A stretch of DNA of 64,000 nucleotides, from NCBI RefSeq assembly GCF_000315625.1, contig NW_005434620.1, positions 185,631-249,630 on the forward strand, in the 5' to 3' direction. The DNA is from Guillardia theta CCMP2712. Its lineage: Eukaryota; Protista; Cryptophyta. The notes beneath the pieces are model-generated. The model was given only the letters and a program-made list of their open reading frames with translations, was not told the DNA's origin and made no database searches. Both the position numbers and the translations under genes were made by a program. Positions 60-6,917 of the stretch are shown in pieces (the stretch's first letter is position 1; each line of letters begins with the position of its first letter).

Positions 60-404
60 TCACTTGTGATAGAATCGCCTGATCCCTTCGCGGTAGGTCT
101 CTAGAGACTCATCCAGGTTGTCGAGCTCTTGCAGGCAGACAGCGCAGTTGTTGTAGTCGTCGGCATTCGCTTCCTCCTCCTCCATCATCGTCTTGTACAG
201 TTTGACTGCCTCCTCGTACTTCTCCTCCTGTATGTTCTCGATAGCTGCCTTCCTCCTTCTCACCGTCTCCCCCGACTGTCTGCTCGGCGTCACCGCCATG
301 ATGCAAGCACTTATGTAGAGGGTTGCAAGCATGAACCTCCTTGCACGACACATCGTAATCATCTTCTTCGTGTTGATCCTTGAGGAGCAATCTAGTTTCA
401 GCAA
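60..404 (-). CDS. TPR-repeat protein, first exon; runs off the window start
   Basis: KYEEAVKLYKTMM..ADDYNNCAVCLQELDNLDESLETYREGIRRF fits TPR consensus. Hydrophobic leader MLATLYISACIMAV. GTGAG donor near 63. Confidence 0.7.
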   Translation of the reverse strand: MLKLDCSSRINTKKMITMCRARRFMLATLYISACIMAVTPSRQSGETVRRRKAAIENIQEEKYEEAVKLYKTMMEEEEANADDYNNCAVCLQELDNLDESLETYREGIRRFYHK

Positions 405-918
405 GCAGAAGACTCTTCCCGTCTCGTCCTCCTCCCTCTCCTCCCGTCTCCTCTCCTCCCGTCTCCTCTCCTCCCGCTGCCTCCTCCTCTCCTCTCCTTC
501 TTCCTCCTCCTCCTCCTCCTCCTCTCACTAGCTCGTCTTGTCGAATCCTCGCATGGCTTCACTGCATCGTCACCTGATACCCCACCCTCTGGAATATTCG
601 AGTACCCGTAGTTTATGAGTCATTTATGGGGGTAATTCATTTCTGAGCAAGGGGTGGGGTAGGAGCTTGTGGAGCGCCCGACATGGATGTTATCAACATG
701 TCAACAGGTCAGTGGAGGAGGAGGAGGACGAGGACGAGGACGAGGAGCAGGAGGAGCATGAGGAGCATGAGGAGCAGCAAGGAGCAGGACGAGCAGGAGG
801 ACGAGCAGGAGGAGGACTAGGACCAGAACCAGAACCAGGACCAGGAGTATGAAGAAGAAAGGAGAGGAAGGAACAGCTTGGTCTATCGGGGAGCACAACG
901 AAGGGGAAGGAAGGGAGG

Positions 919-953
<35 letters not shown>

Positions 954-1001
954 GAAGAGAAAGGGAGGAGGTGGGGGAGTACCAGCATCGAAGTTAGACT
1001 C

Positions 1002-3713
1002 TTGATCTTGACGGCACCTTACATCAGGCCCCTGGTGCCCACCGGACATCACGACCCACCTCACTACACACCTGACAACGGGCAAGAGGTCTGCAGGCCC
1101 GTACCACAGCGCCAGGTATGTCCGAAGAGTGTGAATGCCTTGCTCGCGTTCTCCCTCCTGAGAGCTCCTCGCTTGCCCAGCGGCCCTCCGCCAGGTCCGG
1201 ATGGATGGGTCAAGGCGACTCTGCCGCACGGAGAGGAGATCTGGGCAGCCGTCGGCAGGTGACTCGAGCTAGGAAGGAGGGCAGGCGGCGTGACGGGGAT
1301 GCAGGAACGAGGTGGAGAGGATAAGGAACGTCGTGATCGTGGAGCGCAAGAACAACTCGAGCAGGTACCTCTGTCTCAAGTGTGGGACGACGTTCGTGGG
1401 GTCCAAGAAGAGGATCAAGGAGCACATGCGGGGGCAGGGCAAGGACGTGAAAGGCTGCGTCGAGCCCCCGACGGAGGAGGAAGAGGCGATTTTCCAACTG
1501 GATGATGCTAATTGCGGGGAGAGGGGTGCTGAGCGAGAGCGAGTGCGGGAGGACGTGGAGGAGGAGGAGGAGGAGGAGGAGGAGGAGGAGGAGGCTCTTT
1601 CTGATAACCACCAGCGTTCGCTCCCTGAGAAGAGGAAGAAGAGCGCTGGTGGGCAGGAGTGCTCGAGCCCGTTCCTTGCTAGCACGACGCCTCCGCTCAA
1701 CGACAGGTGGAAGAAGAGCAAGATGCCGGACGGGCAGGAGATCTGGGCAGCGGAACCCCGGAACGATATCGAGAGGATGAGCTGCATCGTGGTGCTGGAG
1801 CGGAGGGAGACGTCCACGAGGTACCTGTGCAACAAGTGCAACTACATGTTCTGGGGTCGAAGAAGAGAGTCAAGCTGCACCTGAGGAGGCAGAGCAGCGA
1901 CGTCAAGTGCTGTGTTGAGATGCCGACGCCGGAGGAGGAGCGGGTCCTCAAGGCGGACGACGAGGGGCATCGGAGCAAGGCGCTGCGGGGGGGGCAGCAC
2001 TACCATACGGCAGACCGGGATGAAGCAACGTCCTCCGACATCGCCGTGGTGAAGAGAGGCAGACCTTTGACAAGTCCGTTCCCAGCTTCGGGTGACCCCC
2101 CAGCTGGGGAGGGGTGGTCGAAGCTGAAGTTGACGGACGGGGCGGAGATCTGGGTGGGGGAGCCGAGGAACGCGATCGAGCGGCTGGGGAGCGTATGCGT
2201 CATTGAGAGGACGGGGAATGCGACGAGGTACCTGTGCCTGCGGTGCAACCTGATGTTTTGGGGGTCCAAGAAGCGGATAAAGGAGCATATGAGGAGGGAG
2301 GGGAGCAGCATCACCGGCTGCACTGTCGACCTCTCCTTCGAGGAGGAGGAGGTGCTGAGGACGGAGGATAACCATGGGGATGGGGCGGACGACTGCAGGT
2401 TCTCCAGCCCGTACCCAGCTAGCGGGCCTCCGCCGGAGGAGGAGGGGTGGAGCAAGGCGAGCCTGTCGACGGGGGAGGAGGTCTGGGCGGCAGAGCCGAA
2501 GAACGCGATCGAGCGGCTGGAGAGCATCCTGGTGGTGGAGAGGAGGAGCAACAGCTCGAGGTACTACTGCAGGAAGTGTAGCCTCTTCTTCTTCGGGACC
2601 AAAAAAAGAGTCAAAGAACATCTCAGACGGCTCAGCAAGGACGTCAAGCCCTGCGCCGTTGCGCCGTCGGAGCACGAGGAGCAGGTGCTCAAGGCCGACG
2701 ACTCGCTCCTCATGGTTCGCAAGGGATACGTCGACCCTGCCGCCGACAAGGGGGCGGGGAAGGGGGCGGCGGCGATGAGGGGGAGGAAGAAGGAGCGGAA
2801 CTCGCAGCTGGCGGCAGAGGCTGACCTGGCATGGTTCAAGCTGTTCGAGCGGTACGACATCCCCAAGAGAATCATCGAGACGGAAGAGGCGCGGGAGGCC
2901 GTCAGGAAGACGATCTTAGCTGGGCCCTCTTACCAGCTGCCGTCCAGGAGCAGGTTAGGTGACGACACCCCCGGACACAAGGCGGATCCCAACGGCAAGG
3001 GCGCCAAGGCTCGCTCGAAACCGGACGGTCTGATGTACCTGGCGGTGCAAGCGATGGAGGAGGAGGAGCAGGTGCTGAAGGAGGGGCTGGGAGAAGAGAC
3101 GGGTGGGTACGACCGATCCTCGTCCATGGATGTGCAGGAGCTGACGGAGCAGGGGACGAGCAAGCTGACGGGGATCAGGAAGCGAGCTGGGAAGCTCAAC
3201 AACCGGCTGTTGGACAGAAAGTCGCTCCTCTCCCTCCGCCTGAAACACCACTGGAGGTCCCAGGAGGCAGCCAAGGAGGCGGCAAGAGCGAGCACGAAAG
3301 CGCTAAGCAGCCTGAGCATGCTCAACGAGGAGTCGGCAGCGAGTGACTCGGAGCAGGAGGGGAGCCGGCATGTTGGAGGAATGGACCGAGCGATGCTCCT
3401 CGACGACGGAGGGCGGGACAGCCGCATGACCTTCGGGGGGAGGAGGGCGACAGACTTGGACCAGGGGCAGGGCATGCTCTCGAGCGTCATGGACGGCCCC
3501 AGCTTGCTGAACTCCAGCTCGAGCATCCATCCTCCTGTCTACTCCATGTCCATGAACCCTTCGAGCCTGTCTGCGAGGCTCCCAGCTCAAGTCCACCAGG
3601 TGCCTTTCTATGTGCCTGGTCCTCCTCCTCCTCCTCCTCCTCCTCCTCCTCCTCCTCCTCCTCCTCGCACCCACCCGCCTACCCGCCCCTCCCTTCCTCT
3701 TCTCGTAGACTGA
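1002..3713 (+). CDS. Four-repeat BED-type zinc-finger protein derived from a hAT transposase; intron 1259-1304, frameshift at 1853-1856, both ends uncertain
   Basis: Four ~100-aa units each with C-x2-C-x13-H-x10-C (e.g. YLCLKCGTTFVGSKKRIKEHMRGQGKDVKGC), followed by ADLAWFKLFERYDIPKRIIETEEAREAV..SYQLPSRSRL, resembling the hAT segment after the BED finger. Confidence 0.75.
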
Positions 3714-4011
3714 CACGACTTTCAGAGCCTGCAGCTTCCAGCCCTGCAAACGTCAGGCATGGACGACCTGCGATCGCCGTGGGTAGAGCAGGGCGATTTC
3801 ACTGCTCGCACGGACCTCCCTCCTCTCGAGCCCTCCGCCCTCGATCACCCGCTCCCGCGCGAGCCCTGGTCGGCCTCTCCCTCCTACCTCAACCACACCA
3901 TAGGGCAGCTGCCGCGGTACACGAGGAGCTGAGAGACTTTATGTACATGTACAGCAACAAGTTGTAAACTATCATTCTTTGACTTTGATTGCCGTTAGCT
4001 TCTCTCCCCTT

Positions 4012-4459
4012 TTACCTCTCCATTCCAACTCTGATGTACTTCTCTTGCTGCTCCTCCTCCTCTCCCTCCCCCTCCCCCTCCTCCTCCACTTTCTCTTCCA
4101 CTTCAACCTTGGAGATCGAGTCCGCAAATCGCCTCAAGTTCAGAGCCTCCATGACCTCTCTATTCGGCAGCGCTGCGACCTTGATCAGGATCTTGAGCAG
4201 GAGATTCTTGTGCGACTGCAGGTGGAGGCAGAGGACGACGACTTGCTTCATTTGCTCTTCCGGTATCGTCTCCTTGAATTCGGGCGGTGTCGGCATTGAC
4301 TTGTTGATAGACCTCAAAGTTTCCTTCATCCCCTGCGAGAGAAGATGATGTCAACAAAGAGAAGAAGAAGAAGAAGAAGAAGAATCAACACAACTGACAA
4401 CAACAACATCAGCACAGACAACAACAACTGTCTCAAAGAGCACCATATCACAACCTGAG

Positions 4460-4495
<36 letters not shown>

Positions 4496-6917
4496 TCTCA
4501 AAGAGCAGCACCATCCACACGATCACCTTGTTCTTGTCGACAAACCTATCAAGGTTCATGAACTTGTCCTGGTTCCCCGTCCCGTCAAGGAAGTCTTGCA
4601 TCCTTGCGCGGAACAGGATCGAACGCCGAAAGATCCCCCGGTACTCCTTCATGCGCGCCAAGTACTTGTCGCGCTCCCTGGAGAAGTTTCTCCGCAGGCT
4701 CTTCAAGATGCAGGTGAAGACCGAGAGCTTCAGCGATGCGTCGACGTGGAACTTTGACACCTCGGGCGACATTTTTGCCCAGTCAACTTGCTCGACGTGC
4801 TGGGCGAGGAGCTCAGGAGTCATGGCAGGGGTTGTCAGGAGTCACCTTGTACTTGGAGACATGGGCTGAGACGTCTTCACTCGCCTGCACTCACTCACAT
4901 CAGCGACCAGCAACTAGTCAAGCGTCAAGATCACCCGGCGGTGCTGAACTTTCTCCTTCATCAGCTCCGACAGCACTTGTCGCTCGACCTTCTCGAAGAT
5001 CACGTTGAGCCTTCTCCTCGATACTGCAAGAGGATCAGGGGAGCGCGAGGGAGTCAGCAAGGACACCTCTGGCTCGTTGGAGGTACAGCCGTATCTGACG
5101 CTGCAGCAGCACAACCTTCCTGCGGTAGGAGCGGATGTGCTCACGGATGAAGGAGACCTGTACCATGTAGTTCTAAGGACTCCTCCTCCTCCTCCCCTTT
5201 CCACATTACCCCTTTCCCCCCCTCCCCCTCCTCTCCTCCTCCTCCCCCTTCCCCCTCCTCACGTCGACGTACCCGCTCGAGATCTCTCAGGAAGGACACG
5301 ATGAGTTTCACTCGCCTCCCGTGCTTCCTCTGCCGCCATCTCGATATCACTTGCCGCCCCCACCTGCTCAGCCGCTCAAGAGCAGCGAGCTGCCTCTTGC
5401 GCTTTCTCGCTAGGAACTTCCGCCAGCACTTGGCGATGATGTCAACTTGCCGCGACCTGCGAGGGGAGGATGGAGCGATCAACGCGGGAGGGAGAGGAGC
5501 GTGAGAGGGAACCTGATCTCTTGCTTGAGCAAGTACCCCCGCTTCATCTCCAGCAAGCGAGCTAAACATGCAAGGATGGCCAGCCATTCTCTCTGCGCTG
5601 TCCTCTTCCTCTCAGCAGCGCTCTGCAGCAACAGCAGTCATGGACTTGACCAGCGCTCTCATGCCAACACCTCATAGTTGAACTGGATCTGCCGCTTCTG
5701 CCGCCGGAGAATCACACCCTCCATGCTCTCGCACTTGTTCAACATGTCCTCTGCCCTCCTTTGCAGAGCGTTCTCCATCTTCTCGACCCGCTCGAGGTTC
5801 TGCCGCAAGAGTCTCCCGCCCTTGTAAGAGGATCTGCCCGTCAAAAGCTCGTGCTTGTTCGCTCTCACGAAATCTTTCGTGGGTGACAAATCTGAGGACA
5901 GCACAGAATCAGATGAATCCCCTCCTCCTCTCTGATATGATATGATCTGATGTGCAACCCTCTCTTTCCCTCTACACTCCTCTCCTCCCCTCCCCCCTCC
6001 TCCTCTCCCCTACCCTCCCCTAACCTCTCCTCTCCTCTCCCCTCTCCCTTACCCTCCTCTCCCCTCCCCTCTCCTCGTCCTCCTCCTCCCCTCCCCTCTC
6101 CTCCTCTCCCCTACCCTCCTCTCCTCTCCTCTCCTAAACAACCTCGCTCACCATGAGACAAGTATGTTCGGTTAGATTCCTCCAGCAAGCTCACGTCGGA
6201 CTTGATGTTTGCTATCTTGCTCTGAATCTCCTTGACGAGCAAGGAGCGATCAGGCAACGGCTTGTCAACTTCGACTCTTCTCAGCTGACATCGGATCGAG
6301 TGGTTCAGCTGCTGGAGCAGCAGGCGCTCCTTCCGCATCTCCGCCTTGACGGTTTCCATCCTCTCCTCCTGCTCCCTCCGCGTCAGGCTCATCCTGGCAG
6401 TGTCGGATCGCACTATGTAGGGCTTCAGCTGCTGCTCGCGAGAGAAGCGCTCGGTGTGCTCCAGCAGTTCATGCCGATGCTCCCGGTAGGTGATGGCGTT
6501 GCGCAGTGACAGCTCCGACATCTCCTGCTGGACGCTCATGCCGCTTGTTTCCCTCGTTGTCATCGCCCTCCTCCTCTCATGCGGCGACGTGATCGCCGGC
6601 AGTTTGAGCTTGGGGACTCTGACCTTGTCTAACATGCCCCACTGCGTTCGCTGCACCTGAGCTCGCTTCTTGGCAAGGGCAGAGTTTAAGCGCGACCGCA
6701 TTTTCTCCATGTACAAGGCTTCCTCCTGGTGCAGGTACTGGTTGCATTTCCTCCAGAAGAGAGGTTGTTCAGGGAGGTGCTGGGGGTCGTTAGCTTGCTG
6801 TTGTGCCCTGCTCGCCTTCTCCTTGTCCTTTGAGCGCGTTCTTAGCTCATCTGGAGATGTTTTCATAGCGTGCATGTAGCCTGACCGACCTTGCTTCTTA
6901 TTACTGTGGTCGTTCAT
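4012..6917 (-). CDS. Multi-exon coiled-coil protein with an IQ-like calmodulin-binding motif
   Basis: Chain of same-strand exons separated by short GT-AG introns. IQ-like VDIIAKCWRKFLARKRKR at ~5400-5450. Long charged helical stretches. Confidence 0.6.

Follow-up and report, generated by a model that had tools for sequence, protein, structure and literature searches.

Introduction

In classical BED fingers the last zinc ligand follows the histidine after 3-5 residues, as described by the pattern C-x2-C-x(n)-H-x(3-5)-[HC]. The vertebrate protein ZBED4 is a domesticated hAT transposase which keeps the hAT C-terminal dimerisation domain, and the SLEEPER proteins possess one finger and have kept both the transposase body and the dimerisation domain. 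The BED domain of Hermes is a CCHC finger in which the helix preceding the His ligand enters the major groove and the loop in front of this helix contacts bases (PMC10368747). Four BED fingers are present in ZBED4, and the recombinant Zbed4 protein recognises specific DNA sequences and activates transcription (PMC3365051). DAYSLEEPER and SLEEPER are angiosperm host genes derived from hAT transposases, and the text of the source article mentions a BED finger (PMC3499209). In the present study we describe a gene of the cryptophyte Guillardia theta CCMP2712 which is located in a stretch of 64,000 nucleotides (contig NW_005434620.1 of NCBI RefSeq assembly GCF_000315625.1, positions 185,631 to 249,630 of the forward strand; hereafter the window, whose own numbering is used throughout) and encodes four consecutive copies of a zinc finger unit preceded by a tryptophan-bearing extension. 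The extended unit is a new and rare variant of the BED finger, present fourfold in a conserved and expressed host gene.

Results and Discussion

Four tandem zinc finger units within one spliced gene

Three-frame translation of positions 1002-2900 reveals four similar segments of ~105 residues on the + strand, which extend over ~1096-2708 and have the pattern SPFPAS.PPP..EGW.K..LPDG.EIW.AEPKN.IERL..V.V.ER..N..RY.C.KC...F.GSKKR.KEH.RR...DVK.C...P..EEE.VL..DD in common. The putative zinc ligands show the spacing C-x2-C-x13-H-x10-C, which is exact in all four units. Units 1, 2 and 4 share 43-55% identity with unit 3 (alignment A1), and a tblastn search of the whole window with unit 3 retrieves unit 4 (E 1e-35, 52% identity over 99 residues), unit 2 (E 6.5e-24) and unit 1 (E 1.7e-19), with no fifth copy in the 64 kb. 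The likeness among the four units is far above chance. Unit 1 departs from the common motif in that VGRN takes the place of EP[RK]N and the SPFP element is degenerate. It is assembled from the segments 1096-1115, 1181-1258 and 1305-1509 (ligand codons Cys 1372, Cys 1381, His 1423 and Cys 1456), the last of which, 1305-1509, comprises the zinc finger core and the acidic helix according to translation and alignment. Unit 2 occupies 1660-1973 (Cys 1828, Cys 1837, His 1878, Cys 1911) and is frameshifted in the window; unit 3, which was used for modelling, occupies 2055-2363 (Cys 2235, Cys 2244, His 2286, Cys 2319), and unit 4 occupies 2397-2708 (Cys 2568, Cys 2577, His 2619, Cys 2652). Linkers 1 and 2, of 51 and 36 residues, are acidic owing to poly-Glu encoded by (GGA)n and contain basic KRKK/KRGR patches; in linker 1 (1510-1659) the poly-Glu stretch arises from the (GGA)n run 1548-1594 and is followed by the basic KRKK stretch. 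Linker 3 comprises 11 residues. Within each unit the net charge amounts to +6 to +10 for the finger core and to -4 to -8 for the C-terminal helix.

Contigs from public sequencing runs were aligned to 300-4300. Those of two different studies, X3 and X4, skip three GT..AG introns (1116-1180, 1259-1304 and 3600-3725) and, being devoid of introns, are RNA-derived. The four units belong to one spliced, transcribed nuclear gene, and two of the three introns affect unit 1. Exon 2 (1028-1115) ends with the degenerate, SPFP-like start of this unit, GPYHSA (1096-1113). It is followed by an intron of 65 nt (1116-1180; joint 1111->1177 in an X3 contig, cut +4, depth 25, splice sites checked) and by exon 3 (1181-1258), which encodes the hairpin of unit 1, SGPPPGPDGWVKATLPHGEEIWAAVG, as read from the translation and the transcript contigs. 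Another intron of only 46 nt (1259-1304; joint 1254->1301, cut +4) lies inside unit 1, and its removal yields EIWAAVGRNEVERIRNVVIVER, which is collinear with the other units. The spliced start of unit 1 reads GPYHSA|SGPPPGPDGW and represents a degenerate form of SPYPAS.PPP (compare ESPYPASGPPPANEGW in the relative P0010). The original prediction, made from the sequence of the window, had placed four tandem units with invariant ligand spacing at 1170-2705. The number of units and their spacing are confirmed by alignment, tblastn and spliced translation. Unit 1, however, begins further upstream, in the exon ahead of the 65-nt intron, and the units do not form one continuous stretch, unit 1 being split by an intron and unit 2 carrying a frameshift of 1 nt in the window. 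The 65-nt intron lies ahead of the hairpin of unit 1, so that the residues formerly taken from 1170-1180 are intronic, and APRLPS, which had been regarded as the start of unit 1, has to be replaced by the spliced peptide given above. The region of the array makes up the N-terminal two thirds of the gene product, whose predicted length is ~897 residues provided that the first exon proposed below is right.

Predicted fold of the unit and of the array

In line with a suggestion of the original prediction, the structure of a single unit was modelled. AlphaFold2, applied to unit 3 together with an alignment of 19 units (A2), predicts one compact domain which includes the N-terminal extension (predicted local distance difference test, pLDDT, 90.3; predicted template modelling score, pTM, 0.80). 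In this model residues 21-25 and 31-35 form the strands of a GW.K / EIW hairpin, followed by strands 47-52, 57-61 and 67-70 and by the helices 72-79 (KKRIKEHM) and 95-102. Cys61 and Cys64 are placed at the end of a hairpin, His78 at the end of the first helix and Cys89 in the subsequent loop. The four ligand columns are >=90% conserved in a comparison of 21 units from the window and its orthologues, and every row of the 19-row alignment which covers these columns shows C, C, H and C, as would fit a putative zinc site. A model of two units (units 3-4) displays an identical secondary structure for each of them. As the linker residues 108-116 have a pLDDT <50 and the overall pTM is 0.50, the units are presumably independent domains on flexible linkers, resembling beads on a string.

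Among solved structures the model of unit 3 finds no match: the best Foldseek hit in the PDB has an E-value of 0.4, the best of 48,161 representative chains compared by VIA-align reaches Z 3.0, and a second structural look gives Z 2.7 at best, for the BIR domain of survivin. When the unit profile is compared with PDB sequences, the best hit is a C2H2 finger at E 0.29, which is unusable. Kinship to MBD, WW, FLYWCH (Z 2.7), WRKY, BIR or Tudor domains was considered and rejected, all of these matches having Z <3.

Kinship of the finger core with BED-type fingers

In the top rows of a shape search against the ESM Atlas we find plant clusters annotated as DUF659, zf-BED_2 (PF26664), Dimer_Tnp_hAT or zf-BED, with template modelling (TM) scores by query of 0.50-0.58 over 65-79 aligned residues and root mean square deviations of 2.3-3.8 Å. 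In about half of these rows the alignment begins no earlier than residues ~30-38, and the others extend further upstream. With a domain this short and predicted models on both sides, we take this as moderate evidence that the unit adopts a zf-BED_2-like fold. A search of the Atlas by language-model features likewise leads to BED and BED_2 clusters (0.94, 31/60 hits). Alignment of the unit profile A2 with a profile of GGPQKIRVHLTG fingers (A3) by hhalign gives 96% and E 4.8e-9 over unit residues 46-93, and P0059, a distant relative in the GGPQKIRVHLTG family, has a precomputed PF26664 hit graded as weak. A further connection is provided by P0044, a Pfam zf-BED protein (E 1.4e-11, 44.6 bits) which is matched by the unit profile with E 1.5e-5. 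According to hhalign (85%, E 6e-6) this protein has C-x2-C-x13-H in common with A2, and 11 residues lead to its last Cys. The earlier view that the CxxC..F.G...R.K.H....V..C half resembles BED fingers of the DUF659/hAT kind is supported by shape, features and P0044. From these comparisons we conclude that residues ~46-103 form a BED-type finger of the DUF659/hAT (BED_2) kind known from plants which has diverged below current thresholds. A literature search on zf-BED_2 / PF26664 returned no paper.

Several sub-threshold Pfam hits on the zinc knuckle were rejected as indicators of the family, namely zf-C2HC_3 (E 7e-4), Transpos_assoc, DUF7128 and zf-UBP. For Transpos_assoc (PF13963) the window reaches E 0.095 and 13.3 bits at a cut-off of 27.7. 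P0004 alone exceeds this cut-off (29.3 bits vs 27.7), by a whole-protein score which is summed over repeats. On the orthologues the Transpos_assoc matches are marginal and comprise ~25 residues over CxxC...H (profile positions ~30-62 of 74).

The tryptophan-bearing extension

The ~45 residues ahead of the finger consist of a Pro-rich SPFP..PPP segment, the Trp hairpin GW.K...DG.EIW with two invariant Trp residues, and an EPKN.IERL connector. As seen from the alignment, this extension has been duplicated together with the finger in all units and all orthologues, and its invariant positions (P, GW.K, W, P.N..ER) reach about the same degree of conservation as the putative zinc ligands. No Pfam family matches the whole unit including the extension above threshold, and the extension alone retrieves only unnamed Atlas clusters in a feature search (<=0.85). 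Judged by sequence, residues 1-45 have no counterpart in described families. The extension had been described beforehand as a co-duplicated subdomain of unrecognised type; this assessment remains valid, with the refinement that the extension is part of the same modelled domain as the finger.

Relatives, domain contexts and selection

Units 3-4, used as query of a word-indexed search, retrieved seven relatives from metagenome or transcriptome assemblies. P0001 and P0002 comprise all four units (61% identity), P0003, P0004 and P0005 are partial, P0006 contains two units, and P0007 consists of unit 4 and the C-terminal region. As had been recommended at the outset, a profile of the units was also searched against proteomes. 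Among 1.84 billion representative proteins, the profile of the 19 units in A2 obtains 67 hits with E<=1e-3, 25 of them with E<=1e-10, which characterises the family as rare; in ~22 hits the match reaches the N-terminal extension (profile positions <20). In a tree of 30 units from the window and its relatives, units 1 and 4 of the window each cluster with the corresponding unit of the orthologues with strong support (98/95 and 96/96, respectively), and the same holds for unit 3 with moderate support (84/83); the placement of unit 2 is not resolved. This grouping by position indicates that the array predates the splits between these species. Each unit position has its own conserved signature, for instance in the triplet after the knuckle and in the stretch before the last Cys.

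Between P0001 and P0002 the ratio of non-synonymous to synonymous substitution rates (dN/dS, Nei-Gojobori) amounts to 0.165 in the units (417 codons) and to 0.31 in the linkers (83 codons), with dS ~0.24-0.27, which indicates purifying selection that acts more strongly on the units than on the linkers. Separately, we observed that in the open reading frames (ORFs) of P0001 and P0002 (L007/L008) the 27 codons past unit 4 have a dN/dS of ~1.2, which suggests that these ORFs read into an intron. The orthologues thus probably contain an intron right after unit 4 which is absent in the window.

Paralogous members of the family place the unit in other contexts. In P0009 (883 residues) two units flank a YABBY/HMG-box-like stretch, which stays below the Pfam threshold, and in P0027 (738 residues) one unit is followed by an Agenet domain (28.1 bits vs cut-off 27) and a Tudor-like region. 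These domain contexts, recognised from sequence, would point to chromatin or DNA. P0027 may additionally possess a homeobox-like tail, which lacks Pfam support. The weaker profile hits align to the core only (profile positions ~46-93). They include a family of Q-rich proteins having two fingers of the type ...RY.C.YC.F.FVGGPQKIRVHLTG...C, the protein P0039 with four fingers of plant type, and P0042, P0046 and P0055, in which a Trp-less hairpin precedes the finger. A search for full-length relatives of P0055, which might form a bridge to DUF659, returned only P0055 itself.

Proposed function

We regard it as probable that the gene product with its four BED_2-type modules is a lineage-specific DNA-binding transcription or chromatin factor whose finger stems from a hAT transposase. 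DNA binding is suggested by the kinship to BED fingers, the basic core and the domain partners of the paralogues. Each module would be composed of three strands, a C-x2-C knuckle, a basic helix GSKKRxKEH which ends in the ligand His, a Cys ten residues later and an acidic helix, and the family-specific extension of ~45 residues would be fused ahead of each finger. Four such modules, independently folded around zinc and joined by flexible acidic/basic linkers, might allow the protein to recognise a DNA site which is long, composite or repeated, in the manner of multi-BED and other zinc finger arrays. If the Hermes BED domain is taken as a guide, the basic helix would be inserted into the major groove together with the loop preceding it. 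The positional counterparts of the Hermes contacts would be residues 65-77, i.e. a variable triplet followed by F/W-G-S/T-K-K-R-x-K-E. The near-invariant GSKKR.KEH could establish generic or shared contacts, and candidates for specificity are the position-specific residues 65-67, 80-88 and 90-94. The Trp hairpin may serve as a second DNA-contacting surface or as a protein-binding surface. Most likely the finger would have been recruited long ago from a hAT-type transposase; since neither a transposase core nor DUF659 nor a hAT dimerisation domain is detectable, it is the finger itself which argues for this origin.

A number of observations weigh against this interpretation. Hmmscan gives no zf-BED (PF02892) hit on the units of the window at E<=10 and none on the orthologues at E<=1, and no model of the scanned Pfam set, which did not contain PF26664, exceeds its threshold on the window units. 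The precomputed PF26664 hit on the orthologue P0003 is only faint, as is that on P0039. The ligand pattern of classical BED fingers is not present, the fourth ligand being located 10 residues past the His (H-x10-C) in all four units. Matches of the model to solved BED structures are weak (ZBED1 2ct5 with Z 2.4, Hermes 8eb5 with Z 2.1). Pfam, Atlas, homologue search and BLAST detect no RNase H-like core, no DUF659 and no hAT dimerisation domain. Finally, the basic helix is nearly invariant across units and paralogues, which fits contacts to the backbone or to nucleic acid in general equally well.

The ~105-residue unit as a whole could moreover be an undescribed composite domain, consisting of a BED_2 finger and an integral Trp hairpin, which would define a new transcription or chromatin factor family of one protist/algal lineage and whose hairpin would act as second recognition surface. 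We put this forward tentatively; among 48,161 chains no solved structure is close to the unit (best Z 3.0). If it holds true, the composite domain is used in fourfold arrays, in pairs around an HMG-like box and as a single unit together with Agenet readers, and the hairpin would recognise minor-groove or flanking DNA, or else a peptide or histone ligand, and thereby exceed the capabilities of ordinary BED fingers.

We consider it unlikely that the modules are zinc domains which bind RNA or a protein or chromatin ligand, for example histone tails or Pro-rich peptides, rather than a DNA sequence; the Trp hairpin would then form a surface of the WW or reader type, and the array would function as a multivalent adaptor. 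The hairpin motif GW...G.EIW..EP is indeed reminiscent of strands 1 and 2 of a WW domain, and WW, Tudor and BIR/survivin chains occur among the weak structural matches, but these are at noise level (Z <=3 or Foldseek E >0.4). The linkage of the unit to Agenet/Tudor reader domains in a paralogue, the invariance of the basic helix between units, and the fact that ZBED4 also binds RNA (PMC3365051) would agree with such a role. The only coherent neighbours, however, are BED-type fingers, whose characterised members bind DNA, and the core charge of +6 to +10 suits nucleic acid.

C-terminal region and the question of a mobile element

Unit 4 is followed in the same exon by a C-terminal region (2709-3599) with two conserved islands, …AEADLAWFKLFERYDIPKRIIETEE…PSYQLPSRSRLGDDTPGHKADP…GLMYLAVQ… at ~2790-3083 and …RKRAGKLNNRLLDRKSLLSLRLKHHW… at ~3170-3260. 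In a homologue search these islands turned out to be common only to the orthologues P0007 and P0101. The region has no Pfam match (window 1857-3710, and likewise P0007), its best hit in the Atlas feature search is an unnamed cluster at 0.76, and its BLAST comparison with the hAT-like protein P0055 yields E 0.4. The presence of hAT remnants in this region, which we had considered, is supported by none of these three results. The segment ADLAWFKLFERYDIP...PSYQLPSRSRL presumably resembles the start of DUF659 proteins and is taken as a lead only.

That the gene belongs to a mobile element, encoding a hAT-like transposase or an accessory protein which is active or recently decayed, appears very improbable. 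BED_2-type fingers are indeed typical of DUF659/hAT transposases, and marginal Transpos_assoc hits are found on the orthologues. Yet Pfam reveals no transposase, DUF659 or hAT dimerisation domain, the C-terminal region has no named Atlas neighbour by features and is no closer to P0055 than stated above. Terminal inverted repeats do not flank the gene, around which only (GGA)n/(TCC)n complementarity is present, and the window contains no second copy. Moreover, the gene has introns and spliced transcripts, and the array of four units persists under purifying selection in orthologues from several further assemblies.

Gene model and the frameshift in unit 2

In the window the intact gene is split into two ORFs by a frameshift. 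Unit 1 begins in the frame of 1002, meets a stop at 1260 and resumes at ~1305 in the frame of 1003. Unit 2 follows the frame of 1003 to ~1856 and then that of 1002, and units 3 and 4 are located in the long ORF 1707-3713. Compared with the window, X3 (depth 168) and X4 contain one extra G after 1852 which restores the frame of unit 2, and the transcript encodes an intact protein. The low-depth X2 contigs of 2011 match the window at 1852 and show two more homopolymer indels in the gene (1464, 2111). The run of four G at 1849-1852 in the window is probably a homopolymer miscall of the assembly, and an indel between strains is less likely. A real frameshift in unit 2, and hence a pseudogene in the source strain, is hardly tenable: the window and the low-depth X2 contigs both lack the extra G, but transcript-like contigs from two further studies, which span both organism labels, contain it and are in frame, the X2 indels at 1464 and 2111 in the same gene are typical of read errors, and the frame past the shift is fully open and conserved. 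The case illustrates how a homopolymer error of the assembly, together with short introns, can mask an intact gene.

At its 5' end the gene probably starts with a coding exon at 683-707 (+ strand), with ATG 683 or 698 and the donor cag|GTCAGT at 708. Apart from 683 (or 698), no upstream ATG is followed by a phase-1 donor with an exon ending in cag. Record 11 of X3 aligns down to 1025, a 3-nt over-extension beyond the acceptor cag|G at 1027/1028, and 29 nucleotides further upstream are unplaced; the proposal of the exon is based on this 3-nt overlap and the 29 unplaced nucleotides in one transcript contig. The candidate first intron comprises 320 nt within the 683-1027 region and is rich in GA/GAG repeats. 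At the 3' end an intron of 126 nt (3600-3725), which contains a (TCC)n run and is documented by X3 and X4 contigs, separates the exon of units 2-4 from the last coding exon (3726-3932; stop codon 3930-3932). As the ORF 1707-3713 reads through this intron and its (TCC)n run, the 16-residue poly-Pro tail of the ORF is an artefact. Two further gaps in the contig alignments were rejected as introns. The gap 4037-4109 has no GT..AG ends and falls into a skipped repeat after the stop codon, and the joint 816->1952 has CT..AA ends between GAG-rich repeats and is taken as an assembly artefact.

Both neighbouring ORFs are located on the - strand. Upstream, the ORF 60-404 is predicted to encode a helical, TPR-like protein; it diverges from the finger gene, from which it is separated by a repeat-rich gap of ~300 nt. 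Downstream, the ORF 4326-4823 (165 residues) is convergent with it. Record 12 of X3 runs from the finger gene beyond 4300, so that the 3' ends of the two genes may overlap.

Comparison with known systems

For most algae and protists little is known about the transcription factor repertoire, and DNA-binding domains specific to a lineage usually escape notice for want of a profile. A profile derived from the A2 alignment would allow the proteins of this family to be annotated. The finding adds a family and a foldable domain and changes no general principle.

By predicted structure (aligned mostly over residues ~30-103) as well as by language-model features, the nearest described domain is zf-BED_2 (PF26664) of plant DUF659/hAT proteins. 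Like the units studied here it shows C-x2-C, a G-rich turn, a basic helix leading to His, a Cys ~10 residues further on and a helix introduced by Pro. In contrast to zf-BED_2, our units are preceded by the ~45-residue extension with its two invariant Trp residues. The first strand, aromatic in the plant domain, is aliphatic here (V.V.ER), and GS/GT-KKR replaces GG..R. In addition, the units form a fourfold tandem array with no DUF659 or hAT dimerisation domain behind it. From Transpos_assoc (PF13963) the units differ in that only ~25 of the 74 positions are matched, and the remainder of that domain is absent here.

With classical BED domains (PF02892; Hermes 8eb5, ZBED1 2ct5) the units have in common the CCHC/CCHH type of finger, the beta-hairpin knuckle and the His-bearing helix. 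Classical BED domains originate from hAT transposases and bind DNA sequence-specifically through this helix (PMC10368747). In Hermes the last ligand follows 1 residue after the His (PMC10368747), compared to 10 residues in our units, which furthermore add the N-terminal hairpin and the C-terminal acidic helix.

ZBED4 corresponds to the present protein in that several BED-type fingers are found in one host protein. Its classical BED fingers, however, are spread along the protein, whereas the extended units described here are close tandem duplicates; no hAT remnant is detectable next to them, and their array would have an independent origin in the algal lineage. The SLEEPER proteins differ from the present protein, which combines four extended fingers with an unrelated C-terminal region. 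The family may offer a tractable example of how BED fingers borrowed from hAT transposases become elaborated and multiplied in host regulators, in parallel to ZBED proteins of vertebrates and SLEEPER proteins of plants.

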